From the NCBI RefSeq assembly GCF_902713615.1, contig NC_052154.1, forward strand, positions 192,982,948 to 193,046,947: a DNA stretch of 64,000 nucleotides. Direction: 5' to 3'. The stretch comes from Scyliorhinus canicula (Eukaryota). Positions 8,664-63,216 of the stretch are shown here, piece by piece. The notes below the pieces were generated by a model. That model was not told the origin of the DNA, made no database searches, and was given only the letters and a program-made list of their open reading frames with translations. Position 1 is the first letter of the stretch; each line of letters starts with the position of its first letter. The position numbers and the translations under genes are program-made.

Positions 8664-8995
8664 CTACAAATGGTGAGCTGTCTGCTGAGCGGAAATAGTT
8701 ACTGGATAGTTGGTACCTGGAGCTGGTTCCTCCTCCACTTTGATTTTAGGAGTCAGTAACCACTCATTAAATAGCGTATTAGGACTGTTCTTTACATACC
8801 TCCCACTCTCTGATATCAACGTGTAATCAAAAGGTTCGGATTTTACTCCATTACTATTGCCAACGTGAATATTGGCAATTGGCTTTCTTTCAGACCTACT
8901 GCAGTCTGTAGCACGGGTGGGGTTACAATGCACGGAAACTTCTGGGTCACACAAATTCTTTTCAGGGTTTTGTTTGCTCAGCGAACTGCATAAGT
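8664..8995 (-). CDS. Terminal coding exon of the PRDM-like gene (LCSSLSKQNPEKNL...VKSEP...IKVEEEP...AHHL*)
   Basis: Acceptor ttatctttttttctag; phase 1 start gives 110 codons to TAG. Non-repetitive sequence with VKSE and IKVE motifs typical of transcription-factor tails. Confidence 0.75.
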
Positions 8996-9594
8996 CTAGA
9001 AAAAAGATAAGACAATGAATAAAACATTGCGTTCATTTCCATTTTAGAAATGAGTTGATGCCCATAAATAGTCATGCTTTTGATAATTTATCGTTAGTTT
9101 ATCTGACATGTTAGTGCCCAAGAATATATTTTAGGGAATGAACAGCTATTTACATGAGAAACATTTTTTTTGGCATTTAATTTTTTAGTCATTCCCCGAC
9201 TGCATACAATGCAGGAGTGTTGTATCTCAATTTTCTGACAGGACAAAGAATCCATCTATTTCACACTCGGGTATAAGTAGGTGCCGAAATGTAGCTCTTC
9301 CCTCCAGGTAGGCACAGCTGAGATCAGGGATTCCACCAAGGGACACATATCATGGGGGCAGGGGAAGGAAGAGTTTATAGAAACAAGAACTGGTGCATTT
9401 CACAAGGCATTTACCTGCACCCTCCACCTTTACACAATTTTCCTTCCACTTCAATTAGACATTAGCACTGCTGTTTGCCTCAAATAAGTTTCCCGATCTC
9501 GCACGGACACTTTTTGCAAAGATTTTAACTATTTGGCTCTCGCGAGCCCAAGGGAAATAAAAACCAACCGTTTATGCTTGTAAAAGTATACATC

Positions 9595-16190: not shown

Positions 16191-16835
16191 CTGAGGGAAA
16201 TCGTCTATGTTTCTGAAGGGAGGAGGAGTCCACAAATGTTTTCTTGCAATCATCACATTTGTACGGCTTGTCTCCAGTGTGGCGACGGAGATGTATTTTT
16301 AGGTGCGTACTCCGATGAAATGCTTTCGCACAAAAAGTACAAGCATAAGGACGCTCACCTGTGTGAGTTCGAAGATGGTCATTTAGGTTGGACTTCTCTG
16401 CAAAACCTCTGCCGCATTCATTACACACGTATGGCTTCTCTCCGGTGTGAGTGCGTCTGTGCATTGTCAACTGTGCTTGGCTCAAAAATCTCCTCCCACA
16501 ATATTCACATTTAAAGCAATTCCTTCCGACAGAAATAACGTCATTGCTTGAAGATGCAACCTCTTTAAACGTCTTGGCGTTGTTGAAAGGTCTCGAAGAG
16601 GAGTTGGCTTTGTCATCAGTTTTATTGTTAATGCAATTCATTGGAGAATGAGAAGTGTTAGTTCTTCGTTCTTCTAATGGGCAGTCATTCAACAAAGTAC
16701 CACCCCAGAAAATGTCTGCTGCGAAGCTATGGTCATAATCACCACGTTTTGTGACATCCGGAGGGAAATGGTAGCTTGAATCCCCAAAGCACGTTGCTTC
16801 AGTACGATTTACGCCAGGAAGTGCAAAAATTGGGC
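16191..16835 (-). CDS. Zinc-finger exon C (645 nt, phase 1-1), older paralog of exons A/B
   Basis: [67 protein letters not shown]. Acceptor taaattaatatag, donor TCAG|gtaaga. Confidence 0.88.
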
Positions 16836-20600: not shown

Positions 20601-21064
20601 ATAAATCTGAATTGCAACGGTGGTCTCAATAACGGAGACCATGAAACTACCAGACAGACAGGAAAAACCCATCTGGTTCACTAATGTCCTTTCGGGAAGG
20701 AAATCTGCCATCCTTACCCGGTCTGGTCTGTGTGTGACTCCGGACCCACAGCAATGTGGTAATCCTTACATAGCCTCTAAAATGGCCAGTAAACTGCTGA
20801 GTTGTATCAAACCACTTTGGAAAAGTTAAGGAAAAAACTCTTGCCCATGCCATCATTTTTCATCCTTTTCCGATTTCAACTATTTGTCCCCAGCTTCACA
20901 CCGAATGTATTCCAGAACATTTTTAGGATCAGCTCCTCTGGCTACTGTCTATAGGATTGGATTCATTGAACATTGTGTGGTTACCTCTGTACTGCCTTTG
21001 TTTTCCATGTTACTTCCTCAGGTAAACTGCAAATCATCGGTGCCATTTGTATGACAATTCTTAC

Positions 21065-21130
21065 CTTGCTCGGTCATTGGTGCTATTGGGTGCACTGCTG
21101 CTGAATCTATCTGGTCAGTTTTGCTGCAAG
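21065..21130 (-). CDS. PRDM-like linker exon 3 (66 nt, phase 1-1)
   Basis: Acceptor ttttattgttctcttag, donor CAAG|gtaaga. Open frame CSKTDQIDSAAVHPIAPMTEQ; starts like linker 2 (A-C-x-K). Confidence 0.6.
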
Positions 21131-22519
21131 CTAAGAGAACAATAAAAGCAAGTGAAGGATTAAAAGCGACGATCATAGCTGTCTAAGCACGTTATCAACA
21201 AAGTTCTATTCCTGTTAAACTCAGCTATCAGTTTGGTGAGCTGCATAGGATGATGCAAATACTTAGAACATAGAACAGTACAGCACAGAACAAGCCCTTC
21301 GGCCCTCGATGTTGTGCCGAGCAATGATCACCCTAACGCATCCACCCTATGCCCCCCCCCCCCTCCCTCCCATTAACCTTATATTTTTAGGACACTAAGG
21401 GCAATTTAGCATGGCCAATCCACCTAACCCGCACATCTTTGGGCTGTGGGAGGAAACCGGAGCACCCGGAGGAAACCCACGCACACACGGGGAGGACGTG
21501 CAGACTCCGCACAGACAGTGACCCAGCCGGGAATCGAACGTGGGACCCTGGAGCTGTGAAGCATTTATGCTAACCACCATGCTACCATGCTGCCCACTTC
21601 AACACACCTAAACAACCTCATACCCTGGAGTGAGAAAGCATAATTAGCTTTAATCGGAATATCACTCAAAACGTTCACCTCATTAAAACAGGGGCCACGC
21701 TTCAAATCTACTTCCTTGCCTTTATTACACTTTCTGATATTCCGAAAGGGTGAAAAAGGTTATGTAAATGCAAATCTTTACTTTACAGTAATCTCAGCCC
21801 ACGGCCGATATTTGCAGAGCCTGTGAGAGTCCAGGACGAACTTATCATCGAGGATGGGAATTGTAACCAATGGCTTGTACCATTCAGAGGAATGGCATGG
21901 TCCTGGGCAGACAGCCTCTGTTTTCAATCATCAATGCCAGTTTTTTTGGAGGATCCTGGACAGCTGAAGAGAAATATAATCCGACAGGACTAAAGGCTCA
22001 GCCTTGGTTTCAATTTTTGGCCATTTTATTTACTGGGCGTGGCAGGAGCGTGGTTATTACACTAGCAAAGCCTGGATTAAATGGCAGGCAGAGGATAGGC
22101 TCTTCCTGGCAGTGGTTCCCGAGCAACGCACTATTTAGAATGGGACCGTGATGAAAAGTTACATTCAGATGGGTGTCTGTGAAATTGAAGTCAATGTGGC
22201 CTTCACAAAAAAGAGAGAAACATCCACATTATTGCCAAAAACACAATGCTGGCGAATGTCCATCCGGGAAAGGACCCTACTTACCCCTCCCAGTCTGACC
22301 TACGTGGTTGATCCAAAATGCTTCCAAATGGATTTGGGAAATAACGTTCAGCACTGCAGCACCACCACGACTGTAAAGTCGATAGAAATGGACATTAAAT
22401 GGACATGAACCTTCAGACAACAAATTGTCCAGCTATCGCTGCAAACAGATTATGACTGCCAGAGGTGGCTCCCTGATCTAGGTGTCTGCCTCAGTGATCG
22501 ATGAGCATGGACTCATCAG

Positions 22520-25295: not shown

Positions 25296-26751
25296 GTTTT
25301 CTCAAGAGGAAATCAAGAAGGAGGCCATTTGGCCCATCGAGTCTGCACTGGCCCCGAGGAAAGAGCACCCAACTAAAGCCCATGCCTCCACCCTACCCCA
25401 TAACCCAGCAATCCCACCCAACAAAATATGAACGAATGAGATATGACCTTAGGGAGAAGGGGTTCAAAGGAAGGGGGGGTCGGATCAGGCTATTGAGTTG
25501 GATGATGCCGTGATTATAATGCATCACATACTCTTGCTCCTATTTCCTATGTTTCTATGAGAGTTAAAGGAGTGTGCACTGGAAAAGTGGAGCAGAAACT
25601 TTATTTAAAAGTGTTCTTTGGAAAACCTGGTCTGGACTTATGAATGCAAAATGCTGAGGGAAAATATAATTATGAGAGTAGATTTTAAAGAGTGTTTTTT
25701 GTGAGTGGAGTTTGGAAACCCTCACATGTCAATCATCTGGGGAGATTCGGAGGAGACATCCACAAAAATTCACTTGAGGTGCAGAGTGGAGAGTGTATTT
25801 GCCCACAGTCATCGTGTGTGCTTAAAAGGGACTCTGTAAGGTGGCACAGTGGTTAGCACTGCTGCCTCACAGCACCACGGTCCCAGGTACGATCCCGGCT
25901 CTGGGTCACTGTCCGTGTGGAGTTTGCACATTCTCCCCGTGTCTGCGTGGGTCTCTCCCCCACAACCCAGAGATGTGCAGGGTAGGTGGATTGGCCACAC
26001 TAAATTGCCCCTTAATTGGAAAAATATTTAAAAGGGACACTGTGTTAATGAGACCATTGTAGATTAAGATGCACTTTGTAATCAGTGTTAAACCTAAAAC
26101 CAGCGTGTAATTTTAAAAGTAACCAAATGTTTGTGAGAACTGATTAACATTCCTGTGACTCTGTCCCTCCACGGTCTATTAAAAATAAATAAAAGTTACG
26201 GTCTTTTGAGCCAGAGTTCCAATCTGGGATATTCCCATCCAGTCATAACATCAATTGGGATCACAACAAAAGCTTGATACTTAGTTAGAGAATATAATTT
26301 ACTTCCTCATCGAGCTGAATGTGAACAATACTTTCAAAGTTATATATAATGTAACCTTTATTCGTGTCACAAGTAGGTTTACATTAACACTGCACTGAAG
26401 TTACTGCGAAAATCCCCGAGTAGCCACACTCTGGTGCCTGTTTGGGTACACGGAGGGAGAATTCAGAATGTCCAAATTACCTAATAGCACATCTTTCGGG
26501 AGTTGTGGGAGGAACGGAGGAAACCCACACAGACACGGGCAGACTCCGCACATAGTGACCCGAACCGGGAATCGAACCGGGTCCCTGGCGCTGTGAAGCA
26601 ACAGTGCTAACCGCTGTGCTACCGTGCCATCCACTCAATGCGTGGATTCCTTCAAAAAGTAAAACTAGAAGCATCCACGATGAAAGTCTGTGCAAAAGAT
26701 TGTTTTCTTCGCTGAACTGAAGACTATTCCCAAGTCCTGGTCACTTAGGTT

Positions 26752-30295: not shown

Positions 30296-30530
30296 ACCAA
30301 ATTTCAAACGATCACAATACTTTGTGCTGCAGGAGAAACTGCTGCTGATTGAATTCAAATTCACACAAACAATTATAAGAACTGTAATTTTGACTCCAGG
30401 CTTGATATTGCCTAACAAGTACTAATGTGCAGAAAAAAAACGTCAGAAATGTTCCCAATTGCAGAAGGTGCCTTGATACGTTTGTATTGTTATCTGTTTC
30501 AAAATTTGAATAACAAAGTCAGCACCTTAC

Positions 30531-31112
30531 CTGAAGGTAACCGCTTGTGCTTCTGAAGAGATGACGAATCCACAAATGTTTGATGGCAGTTATCGCATTT
30601 ATAGGGTTTCTCTCCAGTATGAAGACGGAGGTGCACCTTCAGATGGGAGCTGCGGTAAAACGCTTTGCCGCAAAAACGGCAGGAGTAAGGTCGTATACCG
30701 GTATGAGTGCGACGGTGTTCTTTGAGGTTCCACTTTTCTGCAAATGCCCTTCCACATTCCTCACACGCAAAGGGCTTCTCCCCCGTGTGCGTGCGGTGGT
30801 GCATCGTTAAATGTTGTTTACGATAAAATCTCCTTTCACAATAGTCACAGTTAAAACGCTTCTCTTTATTACAGGTCAGAGAGCTGAGATTCATTGTCCT
30901 TTTCTTCTTACCGTCGAGTCGGCCTTGTGCTTTATAGCTCCCAAACTTCAACGGGTACTCAAAGGTATCCGGTTTATCTTGGGATAGATTACTATCCAAA
31001 CGCTCCAAATCATTCATCAAAACATCCCCAGATACAGTCCCGCCTTCATTCTCAAGCCAAGGCTTTGGAAGATCACACCCGCCATTTCCCAGAGGAATTC
31101 CATTGATTAAAA
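30531..31112 (-). CDS. Zinc-finger exon B (582 nt, phase 1-1), paralog of exon A
   Basis: Same 4-finger block as exon A. Long polypyrimidine acceptor ...ccattacccag, donor TCAG|gtaagg. 15 nt shorter than A in the spacer. Confidence 0.9.
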
Positions 31113-31478
31113 CTGGGTAATGGAGAAAAAGGAAAAAAGATTAACAACCCCCACCAAACGCCACACACAGGACTGGAGAATGTGCTACTTAGAGTGGATG
31201 ACAGAGAAGATTTCAAATAGTTTGTTTCATCAGTGATTTGACATTAATGCCAAGCCTGGTGCAGCTTTCGAAGAGCGTAAAGTCTGCATTCTTTTCATTC
31301 TCTAAAGCAAAAATGGCATCCCTTCTCCTTTTACATCTTCCACTTCCCAAATCATTTCCCAATTGGGCCTCTATCTACCCCTCTGTAGGCCAACAGGACG
31401 TACATGTGAATGCAGCTCTCACTTCTCACCAGGCAGGTTATGTCTGACACGAGAACTGAACAGCGTTGAGGAAGCGTT

Positions 31479-31832
31479 GGGGCAGCACGGTAGCATTGTG
31501 GATAGCACAATCGCTTCACAGCTCCAGGGTCCCGGGTTCGATTCCCGGCTTGGGTCACTGTCTGTGCGGAGTCTGCACATCCTCCCCGTGTGTGCGTGGG
31601 TTTCCTCCGGGTACTCCGGTTTCCTCCCACAGTCCAAAGATGTGCAGGTTAGGTAGATTGGCCACGCTAAATTGCCCTTAGTGTCCAAAATTGCCCTTAG
31701 CGTTGGGCGGGGTTACTGGGTTATGGGGATAGGGTGGAGGTGTTGACCTTGGGTAGGGTGCTCTTTCCAAGAGCCGGTGCAGACTCGATGGGCCGAATGG
31801 CCTCCTTCTGCACTGTAAATTCTATGTCTATG
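31479..31832 (+). mobile_element. HE1-type V-SINE; other copies ~14605-14927(+), 17931-18263(+), 21265-21595(-), 33145-33490(-), 56560-56894(-)
   Basis: tRNA head, V-domain gggtttcctccgggtgctccggtttcctcccacagtccaaagatgtgcagg, and CR1-derived tail gggccgaatggcctccttctgcactgtaaattctatg. Confidence 0.9.
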
Positions 31833-32721
31833 AATAGTTTGGTAGAATTCTACTTCCTACCCTCTGTGGTTACAGAGTGCACAATCCTTTCAAACCGCAG
31901 AAATGACAAGTATTAATGTCCAGATGATCCACCTTCACCCACTGTTTGTGGGTGAACCACACTTCCCAAATTCATAGCCATAACTGGGAATTTAACATGC
32001 AGGGAAACGCCACATTATTTTAGTATAAATCTCTAACGTGGTGATCCTCAGTTCCAAATCTCTATTTCTTTTAATATTTATTGGTCTCATCTTCTTTCCA
32101 TTTTGAATTTATAGCTCTATTGCGTGCAGTTTGTTTTCCCACTGCCCCCACCATAACTAACCCCCCCCACCCACCCACACACACACCAAGCTTTCCTAAC
32201 TTTCTTTCTCTGCCCAGCATCCAGGATAGCCTACGCGCATTTAATGATTCTTCATTCATCTCCCCATCGCTCCACATTCTTTCCCTCGCTCTTTTAACTT
32301 TTAAAGAAAACATTTTAAAACTGTTTTTCTCTCGGCAGAGATTCTTTGGTCCCTGCCCAGCAGTGGAAACCAGATTAAGAAAACAGGCCCGATGATTGTG
32401 GCTGAGAGTAAAACACGGACTCCAAAGGGCTGGTTCGCTCGCAAATCCATTGTCAGAAATGTAAAGAATCACCCGCTTTCATCAGGCCAACTTCTTCCAT
32501 AATTTGAAAGCGCTAACCGACCAAGTAATATGATTTAAGTTAAGTTCTGAAATTTACAAAAGAGGGACAATGTTTGGAACTAGCACACCGCCGAATTTTA
32601 ACTTTAACGGCCAGCTCCTCAAGTGTTTGCAGCTCCATAAAGCAACAACATAAAGAAATTGCAGAGGTTTTATTTTCTTGAAAGTTTTCTCAGTTGTAAT
32701 TCACCTCATTCAGGAGTAATG

Positions 32722-33035
32722 GGAGGCGGTGGTGTGGTGGTAATGTCACTGGACTAGTATTCCAGAGACCCAGGGTACTGCTCTGGGGACCCGGGTTTGA
32801 ATCCCACCAGGGGAGATGGTGAAAATTTGAACTCAATCATAAAAATCATGAATTGGAAGTCATTCTTGCTTCTCATAAAAACCCATCTGGTTCACTAATG
32901 TCGGTTGGGGAAGGAAATTTATCATTCCTACCTGATCTGGTCTACATGTGACTCCAGACCCACAGCAATGTGGTTCACTATTAAAATGCCCTCTGAAATG
33001 TTTTACCCAACCAGCGATGCCCACACCCCATGTAA
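32722..33035 (+). mobile_element. tRNA-headed SINE, fourth family; fragments also ~18570-18655 and ~20600-20820
   Basis: A/B boxes plus shared block aaaacccatctggttcactaatgtc...tgtgactccagacccacagcaatgtggt. Confidence 0.65.
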
Positions 33036-34429
33036 GAAGTTTCATAAATTGACGCCACAGTCGGGTATAATGTACACCATCAATGAACCAATTGGCATAT
33101 TCAACATTCCCCTGTCTCACCACTTTCATTGAATCATAGTCTCATTGAATCATAGAATTTACAGTGCAGAAGGAGGCCATTCGGCCCATCGAGTCTGCAC
33201 CGGCCCTTGGAAAGAACACACTACCTAAGCCCACAACTCCACCCTATCCCTGTAACCCAGTAACCCCACCTAACCTTTTCTGGATACCTAAAGGCAATTT
33301 AGCTTGGCCAATCCACCCAACCTGCACATCGCCGGACCGTGGGATGAAACCGGAGCATCCGGAGGAAACCCACGCAGACACGGTGAGAACGTGCAGACTC
33401 CGCGCAGACAGCGACACAAGGCGGGAATCAAACCTAGGACCCCAGAGCTGTGAAGCAACCGTGCCAACCACTGTGCTGCCATGCCGCCCCTGACCCACAC
33501 ACACTCTTTTTAAGAGTGGCAGAAGCCAGATTCTGCTAAGAGAATCTAGAGAAACAGTGACCAATCTAATCATTAAAAGGGCAATCTGGAAAAACTGTAC
33601 TCCAGAATGATGCCTGTGATCAGCATTATATATCCAGTCTGTTGCATGCTTTGACCAAAATTCCTCAGCTTGTGCAGTTATTTTACACCAGATTACAGAT
33701 TAGCAATGACTACACGAAATACAGCTATATTTTCAGAGCTTCTTAAAAGGGAAATACACACAACAGAATCTTTGGTTTTCATCCCAACCGTACTAACAAA
33801 TACCAAAAATACTAACAAAGGCCTGGGTGCACTGCCAAGCATTTGATGGTTCTGAATAAAGCGAGACAATCATTTTTACTTCATTTCTGTTCCAAAATGG
33901 CCTTGATATAGATGGAAAACCACACTCTCCATCCACTTTCTCCAAAGCGGACAATATAAAAGGTTTGAAAATAAACTGCACAGGCACGACAAGGAAAAAG
34001 ACGTAGTTTAAAATGGTTGCGTTGGCTTGTTGGGAAAATCCTTCAGGCAGCCAAGTGAAAACTACACTATAGCCAGTAGATGGCATCTGTGTGCTAAATG
34101 CACTGAAATATTTTAGAATGCCACAATTATTTGAAATACACGCTCGTGGCACGATGCTTATCATAACTGGTCCTATAATTGGCGCATGCAACCAGTACGC
34201 GGGAGCTATCGAAAATGCTATAGAAAAGGGAGGTTTGGAAAATCACTTCCAACTGAAATTAACTCAGGAATGTAGTGATGGCTGGGCAGGTGATGTGCTG
34301 TAGCTGCGTGACGTGGGAGCTGGTAAACTCCATTCCAAGCTGCAGTAACCACAGCGAAGGAACAAAAAAGGATCTAAAACTGTAATGAGTGTTGTGTTTC
34401 ACCCCCTGGTAGCAGTTCTGAGGTGTTAG

Positions 34430-35945
34430 TTTGTAGAGATGCAGAAATTAGACAAGTGTGTAACAAAGGCAGAGTAGTATTAATGGGGGATTTTAACCTA
34501 CACATAGATTGGGAGAGGCTGAAAAGCACCTGTCTGAATTTCTGGAATGTGTGTGGGATAGTTTCCTGCAGCAACATGTTCCAGATACAACAAAGGGACA
34601 GGCAATGTTAGATTTAGTAGTGAGTAATGAGCCCAATTTAATTAGTAGCCTAACTGTGCGCGAGCATTTAGCAAATAGCGATCACAACATGATTGAATTC
34701 AGCATGGCTTCGTCAAGGAGAGGTCAAGTCTGACAAATCTATTAGAGTTCTTTGAGGAGGTACCAAGGAAGTTAGACAAAGGAGAACCAGTGGACATGAT
34801 TTATTTAGATTTCCAGAAGGCCTTTGACAAGGTGGCGGATAGGAGACTGTTAAATAAGTTAAAAGCCCATGGTTTTAAGGGTAAGATCCTGGCATGGATA
34901 AAAGATTGGCTGACTGGCAGAAGGCATAGAGTGGGGATAAAGGGATCTTTTTCAGGATGACAGCCGGTGACTAGTGGTGTGCCTCAAGGGTCTGTGCTGG
35001 GACCACAACTTTTTACAATATACATTAATGATCTGGAAGAAGGAACTAAAGGCACTGTTGTTAAGTTTACAGATGACACAAAGTTCTATAGAGGGACAGG
35101 CAGTATTAAGGAAGCAAGGGGGCTGCAGAAGGACTTGGAGAGTGGGCAAAGTGTCTGATGGAATACAATGTGGAAAAGTGTGAGGTTATGCAGTTTGGAA
35201 GGAGAAATGGAGACATAGACTATTTTCTAAATGGGGAAATGCTAAGGAAATCAGAAGCACAAAGGGACTTGGGAGTCCTTGTTCACGATTCTCTTAAGGT
35301 TAACGTGCAGGTTCAGTTGGCAGTTAGGAAGGCAAATGTAATGTCGAGAGGGATAGAATACAAGACCAGGGATGTACTTCTGAGGCTGTATAAGGCTCTG
35401 GTCAGGCCCCATTTGGATTATTGCGAGCAGTTTTGGGCCCTGTATCTAAGGAAGGATGTGCTGGCCTTGGAAAGGGTCCAGAGGAGGTTCACAAGAATAA
35501 TTCCTGGAATGAAGAGCTTGTTGTATGAGGAATGGTTGAAAACTCTGGGTGTGTGCTTGTTGGCGTTTAGAAGGATGAAGGGGATCTTATTGAAACTTAC
35601 CGGATACTGCTAGGCCTGGATAGAGTGGACGTGGAGAGGATGTTTCCACTTGTAGGAAAAAGTAGAAGCAGAGGACACAATCTCAGACTAAAGGGACGAT
35701 CTTTTAAAACAGAGATGAGAGGAATTTCTTCAGCCAGAGGGTGGTGAATCTGTGGAACTCTTTGCTGTAGAAGGCTGTGGAAGCCAAATCACTGAGTATC
35801 TTTCAGACAGAGATAGATCTTGATTAATAAGGGGTTCAGGGGTTATGGGGAGAAGGCAGAAGAATGGGGATGAGAAAAATATAATGATTGAATAGTGAAG
35901 CAGACTTGATAGGCCGAGTGGCCTAATTCTGCTGCTATGCCTTAT
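34430..35945 (+). mobile_element. Degraded CR1/HER1 ORF2 with internal deletions
   Basis: [20 protein letters not shown] and LVRPHLDYC motifs with frameshifts; CR1 3' UTR. Confidence 0.88.
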
Positions 35946-36091
35946 GGAATTCAGTGTACATGCTTACATTAACACTGCACACTCCGGCGCCTGTTCGGGT
36001 ACACAGAGGGAGAATTCAGAATGTCCAATTCACCTAACAAGCACGTCTTTTGGGATTTGTGGGAGGAAACCGGAGCGCCCGGAGGAAAGCC

Positions 36092-36425
36092 TGGAAAGAG
36101 GTTGGGTGCAGTGGATGTTCAAAGAGACTTGGGGATTCAGGTGCATAGGTCCTTAAAATGCCAGGAACAAGTGCAGAAAATAATCAAAAAGGCTAATGGA
36201 ATGCAAGCTTTTATATCTATAGGATTGGAGTACAAAGACACAGGGGTTATGCTGCAGCAGTACAAAATCCAGGTTAGACCCCACTTGGAGTCACTGGGAA
36301 CATTTCTGGGCACCACACCTTAGGAAGGATATTTTGGCCTTGGAGGGAATGCAACGTAGGTTTACAAAAATGATACCTGGACAACAGGGGTTAGGTTACG
36401 AGGAAAGATTACACAAATTAGGCCA
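36092..36425 (+). mobile_element. CR1 RT C-terminal fragment
   Basis: QRDLGIQVHRSLK...VRPHLE. Confidence 0.8.
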
Positions 36426-36544
36426 TAAAAGAACAATAAACTCATATTTCCGTCGATGAAACCATTCCTTGAAATCTTTAACATAAACATGGAACAAAGC
36501 ATTGCTCAGCAGTAAAATTATTCAGTTCACCTCAAGATGATTAC

Positions 36545-36673
36545 CTTTATTTCCTGATGGGTTTAGCTGCCTTTCACCAATGTTAGCTCCATCGCAATTG
36601 CCCGACTCTCGTTTGTCTGTTGGTTTCACCTCCTCTGAATGTATTAACGTCGCGCTCTCAGGTTTACAGCAGG
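36545..36673 (-). CDS. PRDM-like linker exon 2 (129 nt, phase 1-1)
   Basis: Acceptor gtatttttcatag, donor AAAG|gtaatc. Open frame CCKPESATLIHSEEVKPTDKRESGNCDGANIGERQLNPSGNK. Confidence 0.65.
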
Positions 36674-37084
36674 CTATGAAAAATACACAAACTGAATTAA
36701 GGGTACACCACATTCACAGCCACATGCCAAGCATCAAAACTGACCAGTTCGACTTCCACCTCTTAGGAGAAAACATTTCAACTTGGATAGCTTAAGCTGA
36801 CATGAGGACGCAAATTTCCGAACAAGTTTTACCTGAATTGGTTTCAGAAGATTAATATGTAATCTACCATTTATACAATGCCATGATGCGAGGATTTAAA
36901 AGATTGACTGCCTCGTTAATTCTAGATGAAAGAGGAGTGAAGGGGATCATGTGATTCTGTTATGAATTCTTCCCAAGCTCTCAAATAGGCTGCAACTAGC
37001 GTGGTCAGCAGAGAGGAGTGTGATGCCTTTCTGTGGACTACCAGGCAGAATGCGGAAGGGACCATTGGCAATCTGGAGACTTTT

Positions 37085-37980
37085 AAAAATTCATTTAGAG
37101 ATGTGGGCGTCGCTGGTTAGACCAGCATTTATTGCCCATCCCAAGTTGCCCTTCAGAAGGTGGTGGTGAGCTGCCTTCTTGAGCCGCTGCAGTCCTTGAG
37201 TGTAGGTACACCCACTGTGCTATTAGGGAGGGAGTACCAGGATATTGCCTCAGCAACAGTGAAGGAACGGTGATATATATCCAAGTCAGGGGTCCTCCAG
37301 GTGGTGGGGTTCCCAGGTATCTGCTGCTCTTGTCCTTCTGGATAGTAGTGGTCGTGGGTTTGGAAGGTACTATCTAAGGAACCTTGGTGAGTTACTGCAG
37401 TGCATCTTGTAGATGGTACACACGGCTGCCAATGTTCGTCGGTGATGGAGGGTTCTAATGTCTGTGGAAGGGGGAGCAATCAAGCGGAGCTGCTTTGTCC
37501 TGGACGGGGTTGAGTTTCTTGAGTGTTGTTGGAGCTGCACTCATCCAGTCAAGTGGAGAGCGTTCCATCACACTCCTGACCTGTGCCTTGTAGATGGTGG
37601 ACAGACATTGGGGGATCAGGAGGTGAGTTACCCACCGTAGGATTCCGAGCCTTTGACCTCCCCTGGTAGCCACAGTATTAACATGGCTAATCAAGTTCAG
37701 TTTCTGATCGATGGTAACCCCCAGGATGTTGATTGTGGGGTATTCAGCAATGGTAATGACATTGGATGTCAAGGGGCAGTGGGTAGGTTGTCTATTGTAG
37801 GACATGGTCATTGCCTGGCACTTTTGTGGCATGAATGTAACTTGCCACTTGTCAGCCCAAGCCTAGATATTGTGCAGGGCATGCTGCATTTGGACATGGA
37901 CTGCTTCATTATCTGAGAAGTCACGAGTGGAGTCATCGGCAAACATAATGTTGGAAGAGAGATCATTGATGAAGCAGCTC
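37085..37980 (-). mobile_element. L2/CR1-superfamily LINE 3' portion
   Basis: FADDS, PQKCQAM, ILGVTIDQKL, TIYKAQVRSVME. Related 3' UTR pieces at ~15510-15830, ~28740-29010, ~41075-41210 and ~63385-63480. Confidence 0.8.
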
Positions 37981-37984
37981 TGCG

Positions 37985-38043
37985 TGAGAGAGAGTGAGAG
38001 AGACAGTGAGACAGAGAGACACAGAGAGAGAGAGAGAGAGAGA
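37985..38043. repeat. (GA)n microsatellite
   Basis: Imperfect GA repeat. Confidence 0.9.
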
Positions 38044-39318
38044 AAATATATGACATTCTCGATTGACTTGAGAATCCAGCTTCCTGCTGCGGGATTGGCA
38101 CCGAGCAACAGACCCGTCCCCATTCTCCGTTCCCGCACCGTTAGCCATAGCAGGCTTCCTGATCCCATGCTGACAGGAACACGGAAACATCTGATTTGCA
38201 TGGATCAGAAAACAATTAACATCCCCCCCGATCCTCCAACCCCCACAGTGGGACACTGGTGTGAGTATTGCAGTCCTGGCGTGATAGACCCTGAGGACAG
38301 GGGTCAATCCTCTGCTCATGTGCCCCTCTGTTGCTGCCAGACTGTGGAGAGAGAGCTCATCAAGGGTCCTGGGGGTTGGATGGGCTGGAGCCTGGTCTGA
38401 CTTGTTTAAATTCTGCAGCCTGACAGCTGATGAGCAGACCAGACAGATCATTGAAAAATCAAGCCAAGAACACTTGCCCTTTTCTCACATTTGTTCCCTC
38501 AGCCCTATGCTTTTAAAACTGCTGCATTTTGAAGTGTCAGAGTCTCACTAGAAAGCCCACAACACTTCGTAGGGCTTGAATTCCCTAAAATCCTTTGACA
38601 GGCGAAGCGTTCAATGAATTTCACAGTGCAGTAGCTTTAACTTGTCTTTTACTGGCAGCTTAATGGTTTAAACACAGCTGCCAGGTTTATTTATCTTTCC
38701 CTTCATACTTGAATGCATCTGAAGTACTCCATTGATCCTAAAAGCAATGTTTATAAACATTCTTGTTATGATTGACAGCTGTTGAACACTTTGAAGCAGC
38801 TAAGTGGTTTCACTTGCTACTTTCTAGCCACAGAACGAACTTAGCTTTATGGGTCACACTCACGCGTGTGTAGTGTATTGAGGGCTACACAATTTTCCTG
38901 TGGAGGGGGATTCCGTGTTGAGGGATTGGAGGCTGGTGTAGCTCAGTGGGCTAGACAGCTGGTAAGTGATGCAGAACAAGGCCAGCAGCACGGGTTCAAT
39001 TCCCATACCAGCTGACCCGAACAGGCACCAGAATGTGGCGACCAGGGGCTTTTCACAGTAACTTCATACTTGCGACAATAAAAAAACGGTTACAGGATAG
39101 GTTAAGGGATCAGCGGGGGGGGTAACCAGCTCAGTTTCACAGGACATGCCTTTGCATAAACAACTGATGATTAAAAATTGTAATGTTGACTCCAGGCTTT
39201 GTATTACCTGTCAACTATAAAGGTGCGAAACAAACTTGCACCGAAATGCCGACGGTGCCAATACATATTTACACTACATTTCCACATTTGGAGCACTGTT
39301 CCCAAACCAGCACCTTAC

Positions 39319-39915
39319 CTGAAGGTAACCGCTTGTGCTTCTGAAGAGATGACGAATCCACAAATGTTTGGTGGCAGTTATCGCATTTATAGGGTTTCTC
39401 TCCAGTATGAAGACGGAGGTGCACCTTCAGATGGGAGCTGCGGTAAAACGCTTTGCCGCAAAAGTGGCAGGAGTAAGGTCGTATACCGGTATGAGTGCGA
39501 TGGTGTACTTTGAGGTTCCACTTCTCTGCAAATGCCCTTCCACATTCCTCACACGCAAAGGGCTTCTCCCCCGTGTGCGTGCGGTGGTGCATCGTTAAAT
39601 GTTGTTTACGATAAAATCTCCTTTCACAATAGTCACAGTTAAAACGCTTCTCTTTATTACAGGTCAGAGAGCTGAGATTCATCGTCTTTTTCTTCTTACC
39701 GTCGAGCCGACCTTGTCCTTTATAGTTCCCAAACTTTATTGGATGCTTAAAAATGTCTGGCTCATCTTGGGAGAGATTGCATTGCAAACGTTTCAAACTA
39801 ATCACCGAACTATCCCCAGGCAGAGTCTCTCCTTCATTATCTCCACACTGATTCTCAAGCCAAGTATTTTTGGGATCATAGACTTCCTTTTCTGGATGAA
39901 CTCCATTAACTGAAT
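39319..39915 (-). CDS. Zinc-finger exon A: spacer + 3 complete C2H2 fingers + 1 finger lacking its last His (597 nt, phase 1-1)
   Basis: [58 protein letters not shown]. Acceptor ttttttaaacacag, donor TCAG|gtaagg. Confidence 0.9.
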
Positions 39916-41467
39916 CTGTGTTTAAAAAATAGAGACATAGCTCAGAGATCCATTGATGGGATTCAAGAAAATATCAGTCGATCTTGTTGCTAGTCAGCGG
40001 TTCTAAAAGTATAGATCATGGACCACTAGGGGGTAAGGGAGGGTCTTCCGGGTATTCGCAGCTGGTCCAAAATGCAATGCTGTGGCTTGCAATGCCACAG
40101 TCGAGGTCATAGGAGAACAGGTCAGAAACCTCGTCACTCTGGCGACGTTACACAAGACCAGCTCCCGCGCCACACCAACTATCACCAACAATGTAGATTT
40201 ATAAGATTGGATTTTCAGCACTTGCAGGTTGGAAATAAAGAGGAGAAACCAGCCAAACCCAACACCAGACTGAAGCTCTCCAGCTCATTGGTGTCTCATT
40301 AGAAGTATCACCATTCTTTCCATTAATTCTGATAAGTTCTTTCGCAGTAGCAAGCAAAAGAAGGTGGGTACGACCAGTAGGTGGTCTGTGGATATTTTAC
40401 CGTGTCAAATTGCCTGCAGATGAGAGAGTTTGAGAACCACTGTTCTTGAACAACTAAAATATGGAAATCATGTTAACCTTTATAATTGCAGCGATTTCCT
40501 TCTTCCAAGCAAAATATAAACTTAATGTAAACATGGCGGTAATTTGTTCAAAAAGTCACTTGCCATTATGAAAATGCCCAAAATATAACTTTACTTGAAG
40601 GAGTTTACTAGAAGGGTCTAGCTATTTTCCTTGGTTTTGCATACCATCACGTTTAAAAGTCCCGTGACAACACATAGGAACGTGAGTGCTGTAATTAAAG
40701 GTTTTCTTCAGAAGTGCCACATTTGCAGGGGTACTCCTCTGTGTCGGCGCAGCATAAGCTCATTTAAGCTCAACTTTTTTCAAGAAACCTTATCCACTTT
40801 CATCATATCTGCTGTTCAGGTGCAGCACGGTGGCACAGTGGTTAGCGCTGCTACATCACAGCGCCGAGGACCCGGGTTCGATCCCAGCTCTGGGTCACTG
40901 TCCGTGTGGGGTTTGCACATTCTCCCCGTGTCTGCGTGGGATTCGCCCCCACAACCCAAAGATGCGCTGGGTAGGTGGATTGGCCACGCTAAATTGCCCA
41001 TTAATTGGAAAAAGTGAATTGGGTACTCTAAATTTAAAATATAAATGTCTGCTGTTAGTCTGCGTGTTTTTTTTAATTCAGTCAAGGGATGTCGGCTTTG
41101 CCCGGCTAGGCCAGTATTCATTGCTCACCCCTAATTGCCCCTGAGGTGGTGGCGAGCTGCTTTCTTGAGCGGCTGCAGTCCAGGTGGTGTAGGTACATCC
41201 ACAGTGCCATTATGTGCGCGCGCATGAAGTGAGTCTCAAGCACCAAAAAAATTGTTTCCATATAATATTCACACATAGTCATCAAAGGTGCCATTTTCAA
41301 CAAGCATGCCTCCTTTCCCATGTGTCCTGTGACTGGAGTTCAGCCTGCACCACATTTTGGAACTTCTATTGTTCCTGAAGTTGTGGGGTGAATAGAGGTT
41401 TTGATTTATTTTCTCATCTGCCATCACCAGTAAGATCATTTATTTAAAAAATGGCGTGATCTCCTAC

Positions 41468-41578
41468 CTCCCTGGGGTGACTTCATCTGGTCAGCATTGT
41501 GGTGTGACTGAGGTTGTGGAGTATTCCCACAGTCTTGCTCCTCTTTGCATGTGTCATGACAATACGATTTAGTGAAAC
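41468..41578 (-). CDS. PRDM-like linker exon 1, copy a (111 nt, phase 1-1)
   Basis: Same splice sites and peptide as 46918-47028; one synonymous difference (GCT/GCC). Confidence 0.65.
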
Positions 41579-42274
41579 CTAGAAAATTAAACAATAGCTG
41601 AAAACATACCAGTCATACAAAATGGTTTAAACCAAGTGCCTTTGGCAGCGATTTCACAACTGTGATCTGAAGTCACCAGAGCGAAAACGAGGACTGAATT
41701 TTTTGAAGCTTGAATTAACATTTTATATACTTGTTGAATTCAAGGAGAGATTCACAAGAACTAAAAGCCAGGACCAGTGACCAAATGTGTACATTGTAGA
41801 AAAGCAAACCTGACATCCATTGTAGGGAAATTTTTCTAAACAACAGAAGCCGAACTTCTGAAAGGACAGATAGATAGATAGGCCAAATACAGCACACTGC
41901 ATTTGTATAGTGCCTTGAACGTGGTCAAAGATGTCACGGTGCTCTGCAGGAGAACTATCAACTGAATTTAGGTTGCAAGCAACCAATGTAACCAATCGGC
42001 TGGGCTTTGTTCTGAGTATGAATATCACACATAGTTGTTAATTTATTTGAATTTTCATTCATAATTCTAACAGGTACAAAAAGTAAAACATGGCATTGCG
42101 TAGAAATTAGAGTTGAAAAAGAGATTGGCCACAAACAGAAACTTTATAGGTAATAGAAGAGGGGCAATGGATTTCATAGACTGAATCATGAGATGTTACG
42201 GCACGGAAACACAGAAACACACCATTCAGCTCTTTAACCCGGAGTTGATATAATCTCCACAAACTAGTATCGCA

Positions 42275-50000: not shown

Positions 50001-52619
50001 ACTGTTACAGTTAGTCCCTTCCGCTCCTCCTCATTTTCTCTTTACCTACATCGATTTCTATTGCCTGAACTTTTATTTTTGGATTTCTAAATCTCTCTTT
50101 GTCTTCGCCCTCTGTTAGTTTCAAGTAATTTTTACCCTACTCTGACCATACTTGCTGGCTTATGTTCATACACTCTTTCTCTTTTTGTCACATTCTGATT
50201 ACCATTACCCGCATCGCTAATCTGCACTATTGTTTCCCCCTTTTTCATTTAACTTCCAATTTTCCCCTCACAGAAACCATTCCCCCATTTTTTAGTTTAC
50301 GGCCCTGTCCACAGCTCTAGTTACAATAGTGGCCTGGACACTGGTTACACCATGGTTCAGGTGAAGACCATCCCAATAGTACAGCTCCCCTTTCCCCCAG
50401 TACTCATGTTAGTGTCCATGAATCGAAACCCACTTCCCCCACACCAATCTTTGAGTTACGCATTTAACTCTCTGACCTTATTTACTCTATGCTATTTTTC
50501 TCGTGGTTTAAGTAACAGCCCAGAGATTATTACTGTTGTGATTCTGATTTTTAATTTAACTCCTAGCTGCTTATTGCCTTAGCAGAACCTCTTTCATCGT
50601 CCCTCGGCCTTTGGTACCCACGTGTAGATTTATTAGAATGCTGCCAGATATGAGGATATATAAATACATAGGAAGACTTGAAAAATGAGGTATTTTTCAA
50701 TATAGCACTAAATTAGGGGGCGATATGAGTATTTACAATTATGAAACTATGGGACAAGATAGATAAAAGCAGATTGTTGTCAGTAATTAAAAGGACTTGG
50801 AAGAAGCAGCCATAGGTGAAAGATTACATCAGAACTTCAGAACAAATTAGAGGAAAAACATCCTCACATAGCACTGCTACGCTATAAATTTACCGAGATT
50901 AATGGCTGTGGTACAAATATTAGCAACTTTATCAACATCCAAAATTAGCTCGAATATGTGAACGAATGGATCTGGGAACAGTGCAGGACTAGTTGCTGCA
51001 TGGAGTGTGAAAACCGATAAAACTGCATGAATTGAATGGTCCGTTCCCATTTGTCCTAAAATCCTCGTGAAAAAAACAAGTAAGGGTACTGAGATTCAAT
51101 TATAGGATGATGGGAATATAAATCTAAAGAGGTGGTATTTTTGCTTTATGGAGTGTTCAGCAGATCCCATCTGGAATATTGTGGGCAGTTCTGTTCACAC
51201 TAAGGAAAATATTAGTATTGCAGAAAAAAAAGACACTTTGTCGAAGCTTTCCATTTTGTACTCAACAGGGCAATTGCAAGAATATCAATGTCAGGGGGAG
51301 CAACAACGTCATACTGTATGAGAAGAGTGCTGATAGGTTGGCAACTGAACTCTTTGTCTTTTTAAAAAATTAATTTAGAGTCCCCAATTCTTTTTTTCCC
51401 CCCAATTAAGAGGCAATTTGGCGTGGCCATCCACCCGGCACGTCTTTGGGTTTTGGGAGTGAGACCCACACAGACACGGGGAGAAAGTGCAAACTCTACA
51501 CAGACAGTCACCCTAAGCCGGAATTGAACCCGGGACCCTGGCACTGTGAGGCACCAGTGCTAGTCACTGTGCCGTGCCGCTTGAGCAATCGGACTCTGAT
51601 TGGTAGAGGTGTCGCCATAGCCAATGCACCAGTTGATGGTGACTGATAGTTAACTGCCATTGTTCGGAATGGCAGCTTGATTCTGTTAATGGTTTGTCAC
51701 CATCAACCTGTGCATTCTCCATGGCAATACCTCTACCAATCAATCAGCACTCTCTTCTCATATAGCAAAGTAAATAAAGTCGCCATATGGGCAGCACGGT
51801 GGCACAGTGGTTAGCATTGCTGCCTATGGCGCTGAGGACTCGGGTTCGAATCCCAGCCCTGGGTCACTGTCCGTGTGGAGTTTGCATGTTCTCCCCGTGT
51901 CTGCATGGGTTTCACCCCCACAACCCAAAGATGTGCAGGATAGGTAGATTGGCCACTCTAAATTGCCCCTTAATTGGAAAAAAGAATTGGGTACTCTAAA
52001 TTTAAAAAATAAATAAATAAATAAAGTCGCCATAGTCCCAGGTGACCATAGGCTGCTTTCTCCTTTAAGGTGGAGAGTTGACTGGTGGTGATTTAACCTG
52101 AGGATCACCACACCTCAGACAAGGGCCAAGGTTGAGAAGGTGGGGCCTTCCTGAATAGTCTCAGCCAGTACGGTAATTGAACCCGCGCTGTTGGCCTCGC
52201 TCTGCATCATGAACCAGCTGTCCAGCCAGCTGAGCTGAACCTCACACCGTACAAAGTTGCTGTTTCCCCTGACTTTGGCATTCTTGCGATTGGACCAATT
52301 AGTGCAAGACAAAAAGCTTTGTCAAAATCTATTTTTCAACAATATCAAGATCTGTGCTCCCAAACAACTATTTGAAGATATTGCTGCTCAAGGGACAACG
52401 GAGGATGATTCTGAGTCCCAGGAATTTCAACTATTAAGTAAGCTCAAAATAAGAGAGGTTATATGCAATTGAAAGCTTTTGGTGATTATGAAGTGAACTG
52501 ACAAAACTAATCAGGGCAACCGATTTACTTGTGCTGAAGTGTCCAAAAGTCAGAAATTTAAAAATGAGAAGATCCTGAACAACTGAGAAAGGAAGTCAGA
52601 AGCAACTTGTTCCACTCAC

Positions 52620-52885
52620 CTTGGTCTGGCACCTCCTCAGCTTTTGTTCCCTGTTGCACAGAATATGCCCCGGCCACCTCTATTCTGTTGAATGTGCAAA
52701 TAGTATCATGTTTCCCTGTGACGGGTCTGCTTTTAAGCAAAGCTCTGTTTACTGCTTCCTCCCCGTGCCAGATGAACAGTTCATGTGCTGGTTCAATTGA
52801 GCGACACACTTTGTAATAGATCTTTCCACTACACTGGGACAGGGTCAGATTTGTCTCTTCTGGTGTCTCGGCAAGATTCACAAAC
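52620..52885 (-). CDS. PRDM-like exon: PR/SET C-half (FVNLAETPEETNL...IYYKVCRSIEPAHELFIWHGEE...)
   Basis: Aligns to the PR consensus YVNCAR..EEQNL...[20 protein letters not shown]. Acceptor ttgatgcag, donor CAAG|gtgagt, phase 2-1. Confidence 0.92.
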
Positions 52886-53179
52886 CTGCATCAAGTACAG
52901 AATCTTCTTATCGCATGGGCCACATTTCAATTTTCCCTCTAGTCATCAGAAAAGTATTCTACCTATCCCTGCGCTAGTGCTGTATTTCCATCTGCTCACA
53001 TTTACCCAACAAACACAGAATTAAGAGAGGCTTATGATCTAGCAGTGAGGGGTTGAAAAACTTGTATGTTCCTTTACAGCAGGAAAATAAGAAAACAATC
53101 AATTACAGCAAACTTTGGAATAAATGAGTGAATTCATGGTGCAACAATAATTTTGCCACTGGAGGCTGCAACAACATCA

Positions 53180-57098: not shown

Positions 57099-57919
57099 CT
57101 GTGAATTGAAAACTTTTTTTGTACTTGTGTACTTATAAAGGAAGCTACATGCTTTGACAAACGTGTCATCTAATGTGTCTCGGGCACTTTTTACAATGAG
57201 CAGGGTAGGGATTCCAGTCATTGACAAGTCTCCAGCTGAATTGTACAACCGCGACGTGGAACAAAAAAAAATGATTCAGCATCGAAAGCAACATGTGGCT
57301 GCCGACTGCACTTGTTTTCAGTTTGTTGCACACTAGCTGCTGCTAAATAAATAGACATCATAATGGCCCTTGCGGATGAATAGATTTAATGGGAGAGAAA
57401 TGGGGAATTAGAAATAATAAAAAAGTTGACCAAAAATAAGCCATTCATGTCAATGTGTCAGCAATTGCCTGCTTTGCTAATTACATTGTCAAACCAGCTG
57501 CATTTTTTTTTTTTATAAATTTAGAGTACCCAATTATTTTTTTCTCCAATTAAGGGGTAATTTAGCATGACAAATCAACCTAACCTGCACAACTCTGGGT
57601 TGTGGGGGTGAGACCCACGCAAACGGGGAGAATGTGCAAACTCCACACGGACAGTGAGCCAGGGCCGGGATTCGAACCCGGGTACTCAGCGCCGCAGTCC
57701 CAGTGCTAACCATTGCGCCACATGCCGCCTCCCAGTTCCATTGTTAAAGACAGGTGAGGATCATTGGCTCAACATCCAAAAGAGTATAAATGGACACAGC
57801 TGGAACAGCGGGGAGTTTGTAATGCTACTGTGCTGTATGAAGAATAAACTTGCGAAAGGTAAACGTCAAGCTGCTGTATTATCCCTCCACCACATTCTAT
57901 TATCTTAACAATCTCATAC

Positions 57920-58179
57920 CATCTGGGAATATAGCTTTTCCGTAGAAAGTTGTTCGACTGCAACCTGGCCTTCATATGGTCCAAATATCACACCTTTAGG
58001 GATGGCCTTCGCAGTGCACCACACTCCAAGCCCATCTCGATTTGCTGATGGTCCCACAGCAAGCCCAGGAGGAATGGTGTAAAACGCTCTTGAAGGGGTG
58101 TCAATCGCAATAGGCGTGTCAGTGACAAACACAGGTGCTCCATGGCCACCCACAAAATTCTCCTGGCAGTGTTCAGAGG
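57920..58179 (-). CDS. PRDM-like exon: degenerate zinc knuckle + N-half of PR/SET domain
   Basis: SEHCQENFVGGHGAPVFVTDTP...TIPPGLAVGPS...GLGVWC...IPKGVIFGPYEGQ...YSQM. FGPYEG is the PR-domain hallmark. Acceptor ttgttatccttag, donor ATG|gtatga. Boundaries match the PRDM9 exon as I recall it. Confidence 0.92.
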
Positions 58180-59787
58180 CTAAGGATAACAAAAAAAACA
58201 ACTTTACATTGAGGAGCAGTTTCTGAGAAAGAAGGCAACAACCCTCAAGAGAATTGTTCTCTTATAACAAATTTCGAACCAAAGGTAAAGATGAAATCTG
58301 TTAATTTAACGTGTGCAGAAATAGTTATAAATTATGAATCAAGCTCATACTCAAAGTTGAAGTGCCTCTCCATTAAAACTATGAGAGCATTCTAAATCAC
58401 ATGCCGCTGTTTTAGAAACTAAAGAAATACCGTATGGAAATCTGCAGTTTTGGGACACATTTAAAGAGGAAATCAGGACATATAGGGAGAGACCTTTCAG
58501 CTGTTCACGACAGTGGGATCTTGCACTCCCACTGATGCCGTGCTCCCCTCCCCGGGTTTCCCAGCGTCCTGGTCTGAATTCAATGGGAAATCCCACTGAC
58601 AGCGGCAGGACCAGATGATCCACTGGCAGGCTGCCTCCTGTCACCGGGAAACATGCTGCGGAGAAGCCAGAGAACCTCATCCATAGTAATTACAAATAAA
58701 GTAACTATTTGCTCGTCCATGTATAGTGGGGCCCTGTGGCACACGTTTGCTGCCATCCTTCTGAAGCTTAAACAAGTCATGGGTCACTCACCATTGTACT
58801 GGACTAAGATACTGAAGCCATACAATACATGACTGACGAGAGGTAAAAACATTACATCAAGGTGGCACGGCGGCGCAGTGGTTAGCACTACTGCTTCACG
58901 GCACTGAGGATCCGGGTTCGAACTCAGCCCCGGGTTACTGTCCACATGAAGTATAATATAATAATAATCTTTATTGTCACAAGTAGGCTTACATTAACAC
59001 TACAATGAGGTTACTGTGAAAAGTCCCTAGTCGCCACACTCCAGGGCTTGTTCAGGTACACAGAGAGAAAATTCAGAATGTCCAATTCACCTAACAGCAC
59101 GTCTTTCCTGACCTGTGAGAGGAAACCCACGCAGACACGGGGAGAACGTGCAGACTCCGCACAGTGACCCAAGCCGGGAATCGAACCTGGGACCCTGGCG
59201 CTGTGAAGCAACAATGCTAACCACTCTGCGCCCGTTTGCACATTCTCCCCGTATCTGAATTGGTGACACCCCCCACAACCCAAAACAGCGTGCAGGGTAG
59301 GTGGATCGGCCATGCTAAATTGCCCCTTAGTTGGAAAATAAGAATTGGGTACTCTGAAAAAGACAGGCCGCACAGGTCAAATATTTGGGATAACATATCG
59401 CAAAATATTGTTTTTTTTAAACAGGGTATGCACGAGAAAAGAGCAGGTAAAAAAGACGTTTGGGCAGATTCCGGTGAAGTATTTAACCAAGCATAAAGAC
59501 AAAATCTTTTGGTGAAGAAATAGAGGCGGGTAGATGGAATTAAGATACAGAAGTGTGATCGAATTGAATAGTGGAGGTCTGCTCTGGTTCCAATGGTCTC
59601 AGGTTCTAGAACATGATAGTTGTTTCAAGTGGATACGTTGCATCAGTCTTCAACAGGCTGGTCCAATCTGGTCAGTTATTAATTACATTCCAAAGTGTCA
59701 AAGTAGATGCAGATGAAATCCCGAATTAAATAAAAGGGTCAAAAACAGATCCTGGCCCTGAAAGCATTCAAACAAGTCTTCTCAAAT

Positions 59788-63092: not shown

Positions 63093-63216
63093 ACAAGTTA
63101 ACATTTTCGCTACTGCTTTGTCGAGGAGAATTGCTGTCTTTTATTAGTTCTCTCAGAATTATTGGCTTCATCTCCTCAGACTGGTTTGAATCCATATTTC
63201 CATCAAGTATAACTTC
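63093..63216 (-). CDS. PRDM-like exon upstream of the zinc knuckle (EVILDGNMDSNQSEEMKPIILRELIKDSNSPRQSSSENVNL); possible start ATG at 63195
   Basis: Acceptor tttattcttgtag, donor T|gtaagt. Open frame ending in phase 1, matching the next exon. ATG in context AATATGG. Confidence 0.65.

Follow-up and report, generated by a model that had tools for sequence, protein, structure and literature searches.

Probable recurrent gene conversion between two zinc-finger exons of one PRDM-family gene in the catshark Scyliorhinus canicula and other sharks

How can two exons of one gene be almost identical in one part and strongly diverged in another? The question is raised by a stretch of 64,000 nucleotides (nt) from the catshark Scyliorhinus canicula (contig NC_052154.1, positions 192,982,948 to 193,046,947 of the forward strand), which is called the window here and numbered from its first letter. 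Mapping P0157, a protein of 1095 aa annotated as 'zinc finger protein 761-like isoform X3', onto the DNA places a complete gene on the (-) strand, running from 63216 to 8667, that encodes a PR/SET domain followed by three modules (exons B, A and C), each made of a spacer and four C2H2 fingers, for twelve fingers in all. The original prediction, made from the letters of this stretch, was that the finger blocks of exons A and B had recently been homogenised by gene conversion between the exons. Trees, silent sites and shared substitutions all support this, and we put the probability that recurrent non-allelic (intragenic) gene conversion homogenised the two finger blocks at roughly 85%. The exons and the homogenised tract are placed as follows:

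39319..39915, (-) strand: exon B (module 1), 597 nt, phase 1-1, P0157 residues 313-512
30531..31112, (-) strand: exon A (module 2), 582 nt, phase 1-1, P0157 residues 555-749
16192..16835, (-) strand: exon C (module 3), an older paralogue of the same architecture, not homogenised
30520..30894, (-) strand: homogenised tract, exon A copy, 375 nt
39308..39682, (-) strand: homogenised tract, exon B copy, offset by +8788 from the A copy

The spacer of exon B begins DSVNGVHPEKE... and that of exon A begins VLINGIPLGNGG..., each leading into the four C2H2 fingers, and exon B ends in ...QKHKRLPS G|GTAAG. All three exons follow a common plan, with phase 1 at both ends, a spacer of ~90 residues, four zf-C2H2 matches each in Pfam, and the ending ...QKH(K/R)R(L/F)PS followed by G|GTAAG. 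Only these three exon copies of the B/A/C type were found in the 4.2-Gb genome, the next best match having 54% amino-acid identity.

Exons A and B were globally aligned with 400-nt flanks, and the identity between them, in coordinates on exon A, changes along the alignment in this way:

upstream intron of exon A against that of exon B: 44% identity, the random level
30991-31112, first part of the exon: 61% identity, with a 15-nt indel inside (extra QCGDN in B)
30895-30990, second part of the exon: 80% identity
30531-30894, finger-coding tract: 98.4% identity
30520-30530, first 11 intron bases: 11/11 identical (100%)
following 200 nt of intron: ~48% identity

A direct comparison of the two stretches of equal length, 30531-30894 and 39319-39682, gave 6 differences in 364 nt, at 30583, 30676, 30677, 30713, 30719 and 30736 of exon A. 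This is exactly the count of the original prediction, which was also correct on the fall-off of identity upstream within the exons (80%, then 61%), on the 15-nt indel and the peptide strings it quoted there, and on the loss of identity about 10 nt into the downstream intron (11 identical nt, then ~48%). A two-breakpoint likelihood scan delimited a segment of low divergence from 30948 to 30520, with 12/429 differences as against 130/344 outside it, and the longest identical run between A and B is 158 nt (permutation P ~1e-5). The tract begins 17 codons before the end of the spacer, spans the four fingers and stops 11 bases into the intron, and it is a discrete mosaic with diverged sequence on both sides (44-61% identity in the flanks). 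A weaker zone adjoins it, reaching up to 30948 in exon A and 39736 in exon B, and is possibly older than the tract itself.

A separate observation concerns the introns, where a block with the core CCTGGAnTCAA is found ~100-190 nt 3′ of exon A, of exon B and of module 1 of Chiloscyllium (window ~30355-30425 and ~39150-39221; ~19390-19470 on the Chiloscyllium scaffold L013), within introns that are otherwise unalignable. The block is absent 3′ of exon C and 3′ of Chiloscyllium module 2, and it might serve in splicing or be left over from an earlier tract.

Could conservation alone have kept the finger blocks alike? Using Nei-Gojobori counts over the 121 codons of the tract and the 72 alignable codons of the spacer, we found 3 synonymous and 3 non-synonymous differences between A and B in the tract (synonymous divergence, dS, 0.042; non-synonymous divergence, dN, 0.010), as against a dS of 0.60 and a dN of 0.27 in the spacer (Fisher P = 4.5e-7 for the synonymous counts). 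Third codon positions differ at 3/121 in the tract and at 16/52 in the spacer (Fisher P = 3e-7). The silent sites of the fingers are thus almost unchanged, as originally claimed, and spacer dS is not as low as finger dS, a comparison that had been proposed as a check. When the same finger codons of S. canicula were compared with those of module 1 of Chiloscyllium punctatum, using the DNA of L013, dS was 0.55-0.58 and dN 0.054-0.065, and exon C compared between the two species gave a dS of 0.525. Silent differences number 3/74 within the species and 29/74 between species (P = 1.5e-7). Since the finger codons reach a dS of ~0.55 between species, their silent sites are free to change, and the earlier argument that purifying selection alone is insufficient holds. 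Purifying selection does act on the fingers, as judged from a dN/dS of ~0.1 between Scyliorhinus and Chiloscyllium.

A related explanation is that selection at the nucleotide level, through splicing enhancers, RNA structure or codon usage, keeps the blocks identical with no exchange between them. The finger block is strongly conserved as protein and the conserved intronic block lies 3′ of both exons, which would fit such selection, but the between-species dS of the same codons reaches the level of the spacer and of exon C. Moreover, over 417 nt there are 57 substitutions that separate the species and are common to A and B, many of them silent, and 12 differences between A and B. We therefore rejected selection at the nucleotide level, given the dS of ~0.55 in the finger codons, and regard it as extremely unlikely.

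The history of the exons was followed in orthologues from the sharks Mustelus, Cetorhinus, Chiloscyllium, Heterodontus, Heptranchias and Pristiophorus, as well as from Callorhinchus and Latimeria; the trees and the alignment of modules cover seven sharks and are based on annotated proteins. In every shark the N-terminal 30-35 residues are specific to the module (DSVNGV...WLEN-x5-NEGETLPGD as opposed to VLINGV...LENEGGTVPGD), and the same holds for the five-residue (15-nt) indel and for the small exon that lies between the modules. A tree of these N-terminal spacers separates module 1 from module 2 with support of 100/99. The N-spacers thus group by exon across sharks, and the duplication is therefore ancient. 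The fingers give the opposite tree, in which the two modules pair by species in 7/7 sharks with support of 85-100, and 0% of bootstrap trees have the modules monophyletic. This contrast, of fingers clustering within species and N-spacers clustering by exon, is what the original prediction expected of conversion. Finger differences amount to 1-4/109 residues within a species, against a mean of 11-12 between species, and species-specific changes are common to both modules in Chiloscyllium (FIRKEH, VRPYPC, CDKC), Heptranchias (CEKRFV, CNFC), Pristiophorus (CHHSF) and Mustelus (CERKF, CENC). Finger 3 does not vary among the sharks, nor does most of finger 4.

The pairing of fingers by species could also mean that the finger exon was duplicated recently and independently in each shark lineage, by birth and death or unequal crossing-over, with similarity reflecting youth. 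Duplication of units does occur at this locus, as seen in the third A-type module of Mustelus and the 3-4 modules of Callorhinchus, and the window holds a 99.4% identical 5.45-kb tandem duplication nearby. However, the N-spacers, the 15-nt indel and the small exon between modules are module-specific across the seven sharks, and it was the N-spacer clades by module (100/99) that led us to reject this explanation. A young duplicate is also expected to be uniformly similar, yet identity between the two S. canicula exons stands at 98.4% in one part and drops to 61% elsewhere, and the introns of exons A and B are unalignable save for one short block. Independent recent duplication is very unlikely on these grounds.

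Some observations on the number of modules came from the same orthologues. In Mustelus asterias (P0154) there are three A/B-type modules, of which the third nearly repeats the second, small exon included. Callorhinchus milii (P0158, P0022 and P0159) has 3-4 near-identical modules depending on the isoform, and Latimeria (P0168) has three well-diverged modules in which no homogenisation was seen.

The middle of the spacer shows where the exchange has reached in each lineage. It is homogenised in Chiloscyllium (1/55 differences) and Heptranchias (4/52), over its last part only in Scyliorhinus, and not in Cetorhinus or Mustelus. Since the mid-spacer is homogenised in some lineages only, the events were independent in each lineage, with different 5′ limits. 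At the DNA level, the last 117 nt of the two Chiloscyllium modules have 1 silent difference, and their identity stops 34 nt into the intron, as opposed to 11 nt in the catshark. These limits bear on the idea that a single recent non-homologous replacement, such as a replication template switch or a patch of complementary DNA (cDNA), made the profile in place of recurrent conversion. One event would suffice for the profile within S. canicula alone, but the pattern recurs with different limits in seven lineages, and the intron bases in the tract (11 here, 34 in Chiloscyllium) exclude a spliced cDNA donor. We consider a single replacement very improbable. For the same reason, that intron bases lie within the tract, spliced RNA is excluded as the donor in general, and a single unequal crossover is ruled out because both flanks would not be kept. 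Taken together, the ancient duplication, the copy-specific orthologous flanks and the intron bases within the tract require conversion, in the form of repeated homologous exchange of a short stretch inside the two exons. Exon C, whose finger block has 71% nucleotide identity to both A and B with saturated silent sites, no longer takes part in the exchange.

The near-identity could instead have been made in the computer, if short reads of one exon were used to correct the other during assembly or polishing and erased the differences, and a 375-bp tract is within the size range of ambiguous short-read mapping. Six differences persist nonetheless, both boundaries of the tract are sharp and biologically placed, and the same pattern is present in seven other independently assembled species, at the DNA level in Chiloscyllium. 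Read data also speak against this explanation. Eighteen small transcriptome-like runs, drawn from 8 studies, contain 0.83-0.98 of the exon A 31-mers, and runs of this kind contain 0.18-0.22 of the 3.7-kb exon B region, in which the exon fraction is 0.196; a share of 0.18-0.22 would need words specific to B. The runs indicate that exons A and B are both expressed, and we see only a very small chance that the homogenised tract is an artefact.

Recurrent gene conversion would then have worked in the following way. Exons B and A are in-frame, phase 1-1 exons that arose by an ancient duplication inside one gene, older than the shark radiation. During repair or recombination, one copy would pair with its partner 8.8 kb away and be rewritten from it, probably through conversion of the heteroduplex or synthesis-dependent strand annealing (SDSA) type and not a double crossover. 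The last event or events in the S. canicula lineage would have rewritten ~375-430 bp, with one end 11 nt into the 3′ intron and the other, the 5′ end, in the spacer near the codons for ...GRLDGKKK. The process could feed itself, as purifying selection on the fingers would keep the copies alike enough for pairing, and the diverged introns and N-spacers would halt the tracts. Six substitutions would have accrued since the last event, 4 of them derived in B, including 2 by CpG decay.

The derived states come from using Chiloscyllium as the outgroup, by which 4/6 differences are derived in B and 2/6 in A. The changes in B are GAA>GTA, giving E>V at helix position 6 of finger 2, two CpG>CpA changes that each give R>H, and one silent change. 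The divergence between Scyliorhinus and Chiloscyllium, which is a split between orders, was taken as ~200 million years (My) old. Scaling the dS of 0.042 to the between-order dS of 0.55 then suggests, very roughly, that the last homogenisation took place ~15 My ago (range 3-45 My).

Several points weigh against reading the tract as the product of recurrent conversion, or narrow what that reading can say. The cross-species evidence is at the protein level, save for the one partial DNA comparison with Chiloscyllium, whose L013 is an older scaffold with a second module that is mostly N. The stretch 30895-30948 diverges by 11% and might reflect either an earlier tract or just conservation of that part of the spacer. 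The data point to neither the donor nor the direction of the last event, and short-read polishing may have affected the number of A-B differences. Finally, the rise in GC content at third codon positions (GC3) expected of GC-biased conversion is a mere hint, at 0.49-0.53 in A/B-type fingers and 0.38-0.40 in C-type fingers, a small sample in which the difference is not significant.

What kind of gene carries these exons? The remaining coding exons are:

63094..63216, (-) strand: first coding exon, from the P0157 mapping
57917..58189, (-) strand: PR/SET N-terminal exon, from the P0157 mapping and matches in the Protein Data Bank (PDB)
52618..52899, (-) strand: PR/SET C-terminal exon, with WHG for WYG, from the P0157 mapping and PDB matches
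47029-46916 and 41579-41466, (-) strand: two copies of a 38-residue exon, both in P0157
36546..36674, (-) strand: small exon between B and A (ACCKPESATLIHS...), skipped in isoform X10 along with exon A
21063..21131, (-) strand: small exon between A and C (ACSKTDQIDSA...)
8667..9005, (-) strand: last coding exon, with a …LISESGRYVKNSP… tail and then the stop

The gene has the marks of the PRDM family, namely a PR/SET domain (PF21549 is listed) and C2H2 fingers. The top PDB matches of the PR/SET exons are the PR domains of PRDM11 and PRDM9, with near-equal scores (E 1e-15 to 2e-16), and that of PRDM11 is the best match of the first PR/SET exon. Loci that score better are found elsewhere in the genome. 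A catshark PRDM9-like cluster at G000:C12:63.85-64.24 Mb has at least 5 copies and reaches 117 bits to PRDM9, and a PR/SET exon at G000:C23:9.15 Mb leans to PRDM11 with 79 bits and outscores the gene in the window. Because of the near-equal scores and these better loci, the gene appears on sequence grounds to be a separate member of the PRDM9/PRDM11 clade, and we assign it to neither as an orthologue. Two further PR/SET copies of the clade lie at G000:C9:111.98 and 112.07 Mb, on the window's own chromosome and ~81 Mb away. The PR/SET domain starts ~60 residues from the N-terminus of the protein, and KRAB (PF01352) is not among the precomputed Pfam lists of P0157, P0160 and the orthologues.

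A search with the PR/SET region returned only the family in sharks, chimaera and coelacanth, and no named PRDM9 or PRDM11; in these searches, no relatives sharing the gene's architecture turned up outside sharks, Callorhinchus and Latimeria. Used as a protein query, exon B matched only a whale-shark fragment and unrelated zinc-finger proteins, with no Logan contigs of the exon, and among representatives P0122 and P0022 were the sole relevant matches amid long poly-finger proteins. The parts of two family surveys that we drew on (PMC4760075, PMC5519329) name no subfamily with this architecture.

The PR/SET domain itself has changed at the catalytic WYG, which is replaced by WHG at 52765-52767 in S. 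canicula. At the tyrosine position, Scyliorhinus, Chiloscyllium, Heterodontus, Mustelus and Pristiophorus have H, Cetorhinus has Q, Heptranchias and Latimeria have L, and Callorhinchus alone has Y. These replacements suggest that methyltransferase activity has probably been lost in elasmobranchs.

Exons B, A and C stand in series in the P0157 isoform. Exon A is symmetric (phase 1-1) by its sequence, and its skipping is known from a predicted isoform alone, P0160 (isoform X10, named 'PRDM9-like'), which is without the small exon 36674-36546 and exon A. The first residues of the small exon 21063-21131 are paralogous to those of the small exon 36546-36674. The 38-residue exons are part of the gene and lie outside the conversion tract.

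At the junctions that follow the modules, the fourth finger of every module is without a second histidine in the exon (…QKHKRLPS; 30531-30545, 39319-39333 and 16192-16206), and the exon after each module always starts with xC (ACCK.., ACSK.. and DLCS.., at 36674, 21131 and 9005; GC.. in other sharks). Every species retains this arrangement, as does the isoform that skips exon A. It is possible that the fourth finger is of the C2HC type (H-x6/7-C) and is completed across the splice junction.

The window has some further features. A tandem duplication of 5.45 kb (41014-46462 and 46461-51910) has 99.4% identity over 5452 nt, each copy holding one 38-residue symmetric exon; the S. torazame model P0161 has this exon once, and the duplication is either very recent or a duplication in the assembly. 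A minisatellite of ~1.6 kb (26751-28376), with copies ~80% alike, occupies part of the intron that separates exon A from the small exon at 21131 and reads as a long spurious open reading frame of PYSYRTVQL-like repeats. Intact open reading frames of a retrotransposon of the LINE (long interspersed nuclear element) type, one endonuclease-like (509 aa) and one reverse-transcriptase-like (455 aa), are found on the (-) strand at 59884-62788, in the intron after the first coding exon.

How do the two exons compare with known systems? The human fetal globin genes HBG1 and HBG2 are the textbook example of concerted evolution of tandem duplicates by gene conversion. As in HBG1 and HBG2, the copies in the catshark lie a few kb apart and share a discrete tract of near-identity, including silent and some intronic sites, between diverged flanks; the duplication is also older than the similarity suggests, and the paralogues cluster within species. 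Unlike the globin genes, the catshark units are two exons of one gene and part of the same messenger RNA, and in seven lineages the tract keeps to the finger-coding part.

The original prediction had also likened the exons to the concerted evolution of PRDM9, and here only part of the likeness stands. Like PRDM9, the gene has a PR/SET domain of the PRDM9/PRDM11 clade, and its C2H2 fingers are made alike within a species by exchange through recombination. PRDM9 itself carries near-identical 84-bp fingers as a minisatellite within one exon, its contact residues evolve fast under positive selection, and it has KRAB and SSXRD domains (PMC5519329); in the same paper, Baker et al. describe rapid finger evolution for complete PRDM9 orthologues only. 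In the catshark gene, by contrast, the unit of exchange is a whole four-finger exon 8.8 kb from its partner, the fingers evolve slowly at the dN/dS given above, KRAB is missing from the Pfam lists, and the true PRDM9-like copies are those on C12. The fingers within a module are 44-56% identical, and we rejected a PRDM9-like finger minisatellite on the basis of this nucleotide identity among the fingers of exon A. PRDM11 is the sister of PRDM9 in jawed vertebrates (PMC5519329), and the characterised vertebrate PRDM11 proteins are without zinc fingers according to Vervoort et al. (PMC4760075). The catshark gene differs in having its twelve fingers, and the C23:9.15 Mb locus scores higher to PRDM11. 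Exons A and B resemble tandemly duplicated cassette or alternative exons in their duplication and symmetric phase 1-1, and the predicted isoform P0160 leaves out exon A together with the small exon before it. Unlike mutually exclusive exons, B and A are both present, in series, in the main annotated isoform.

The case fits the classical picture of concerted evolution by gene conversion, here acting between two exons of a single gene, and it leaves the accepted view of the mechanism of gene conversion unchanged. What it offers is a clean natural example at the level of exons, with mapped tract limits and replication in seven shark lineages, in which exon C, never converted, serves as an internal control. 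It could be used to study where conversion tracts start and stop and how long paralogous exons remain coupled. It also points to a gene of the PRDM9/PRDM11 clade with three four-finger modules, and the consequence for the protein is two near-identical four-finger heads and one divergent head, that of exon C.

Of greater interest is whether selection maintains the identity of the two heads. That selection keeps A and B homogenised, with the protein needing two identical four-finger heads, is a tentative proposal that we think doubtful at present. If it is right, the two heads might read a repeated or paired DNA motif bivalently, and conversion would let both change together as the target changes. 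Selection would then explain homogenisation in all seven sharks, and apparently in the chimaera, over hundreds of My with the spacer diverging, and the three amino-acid changes of exon B, one of them at a DNA-contact position, would be transient or the start of an escape.

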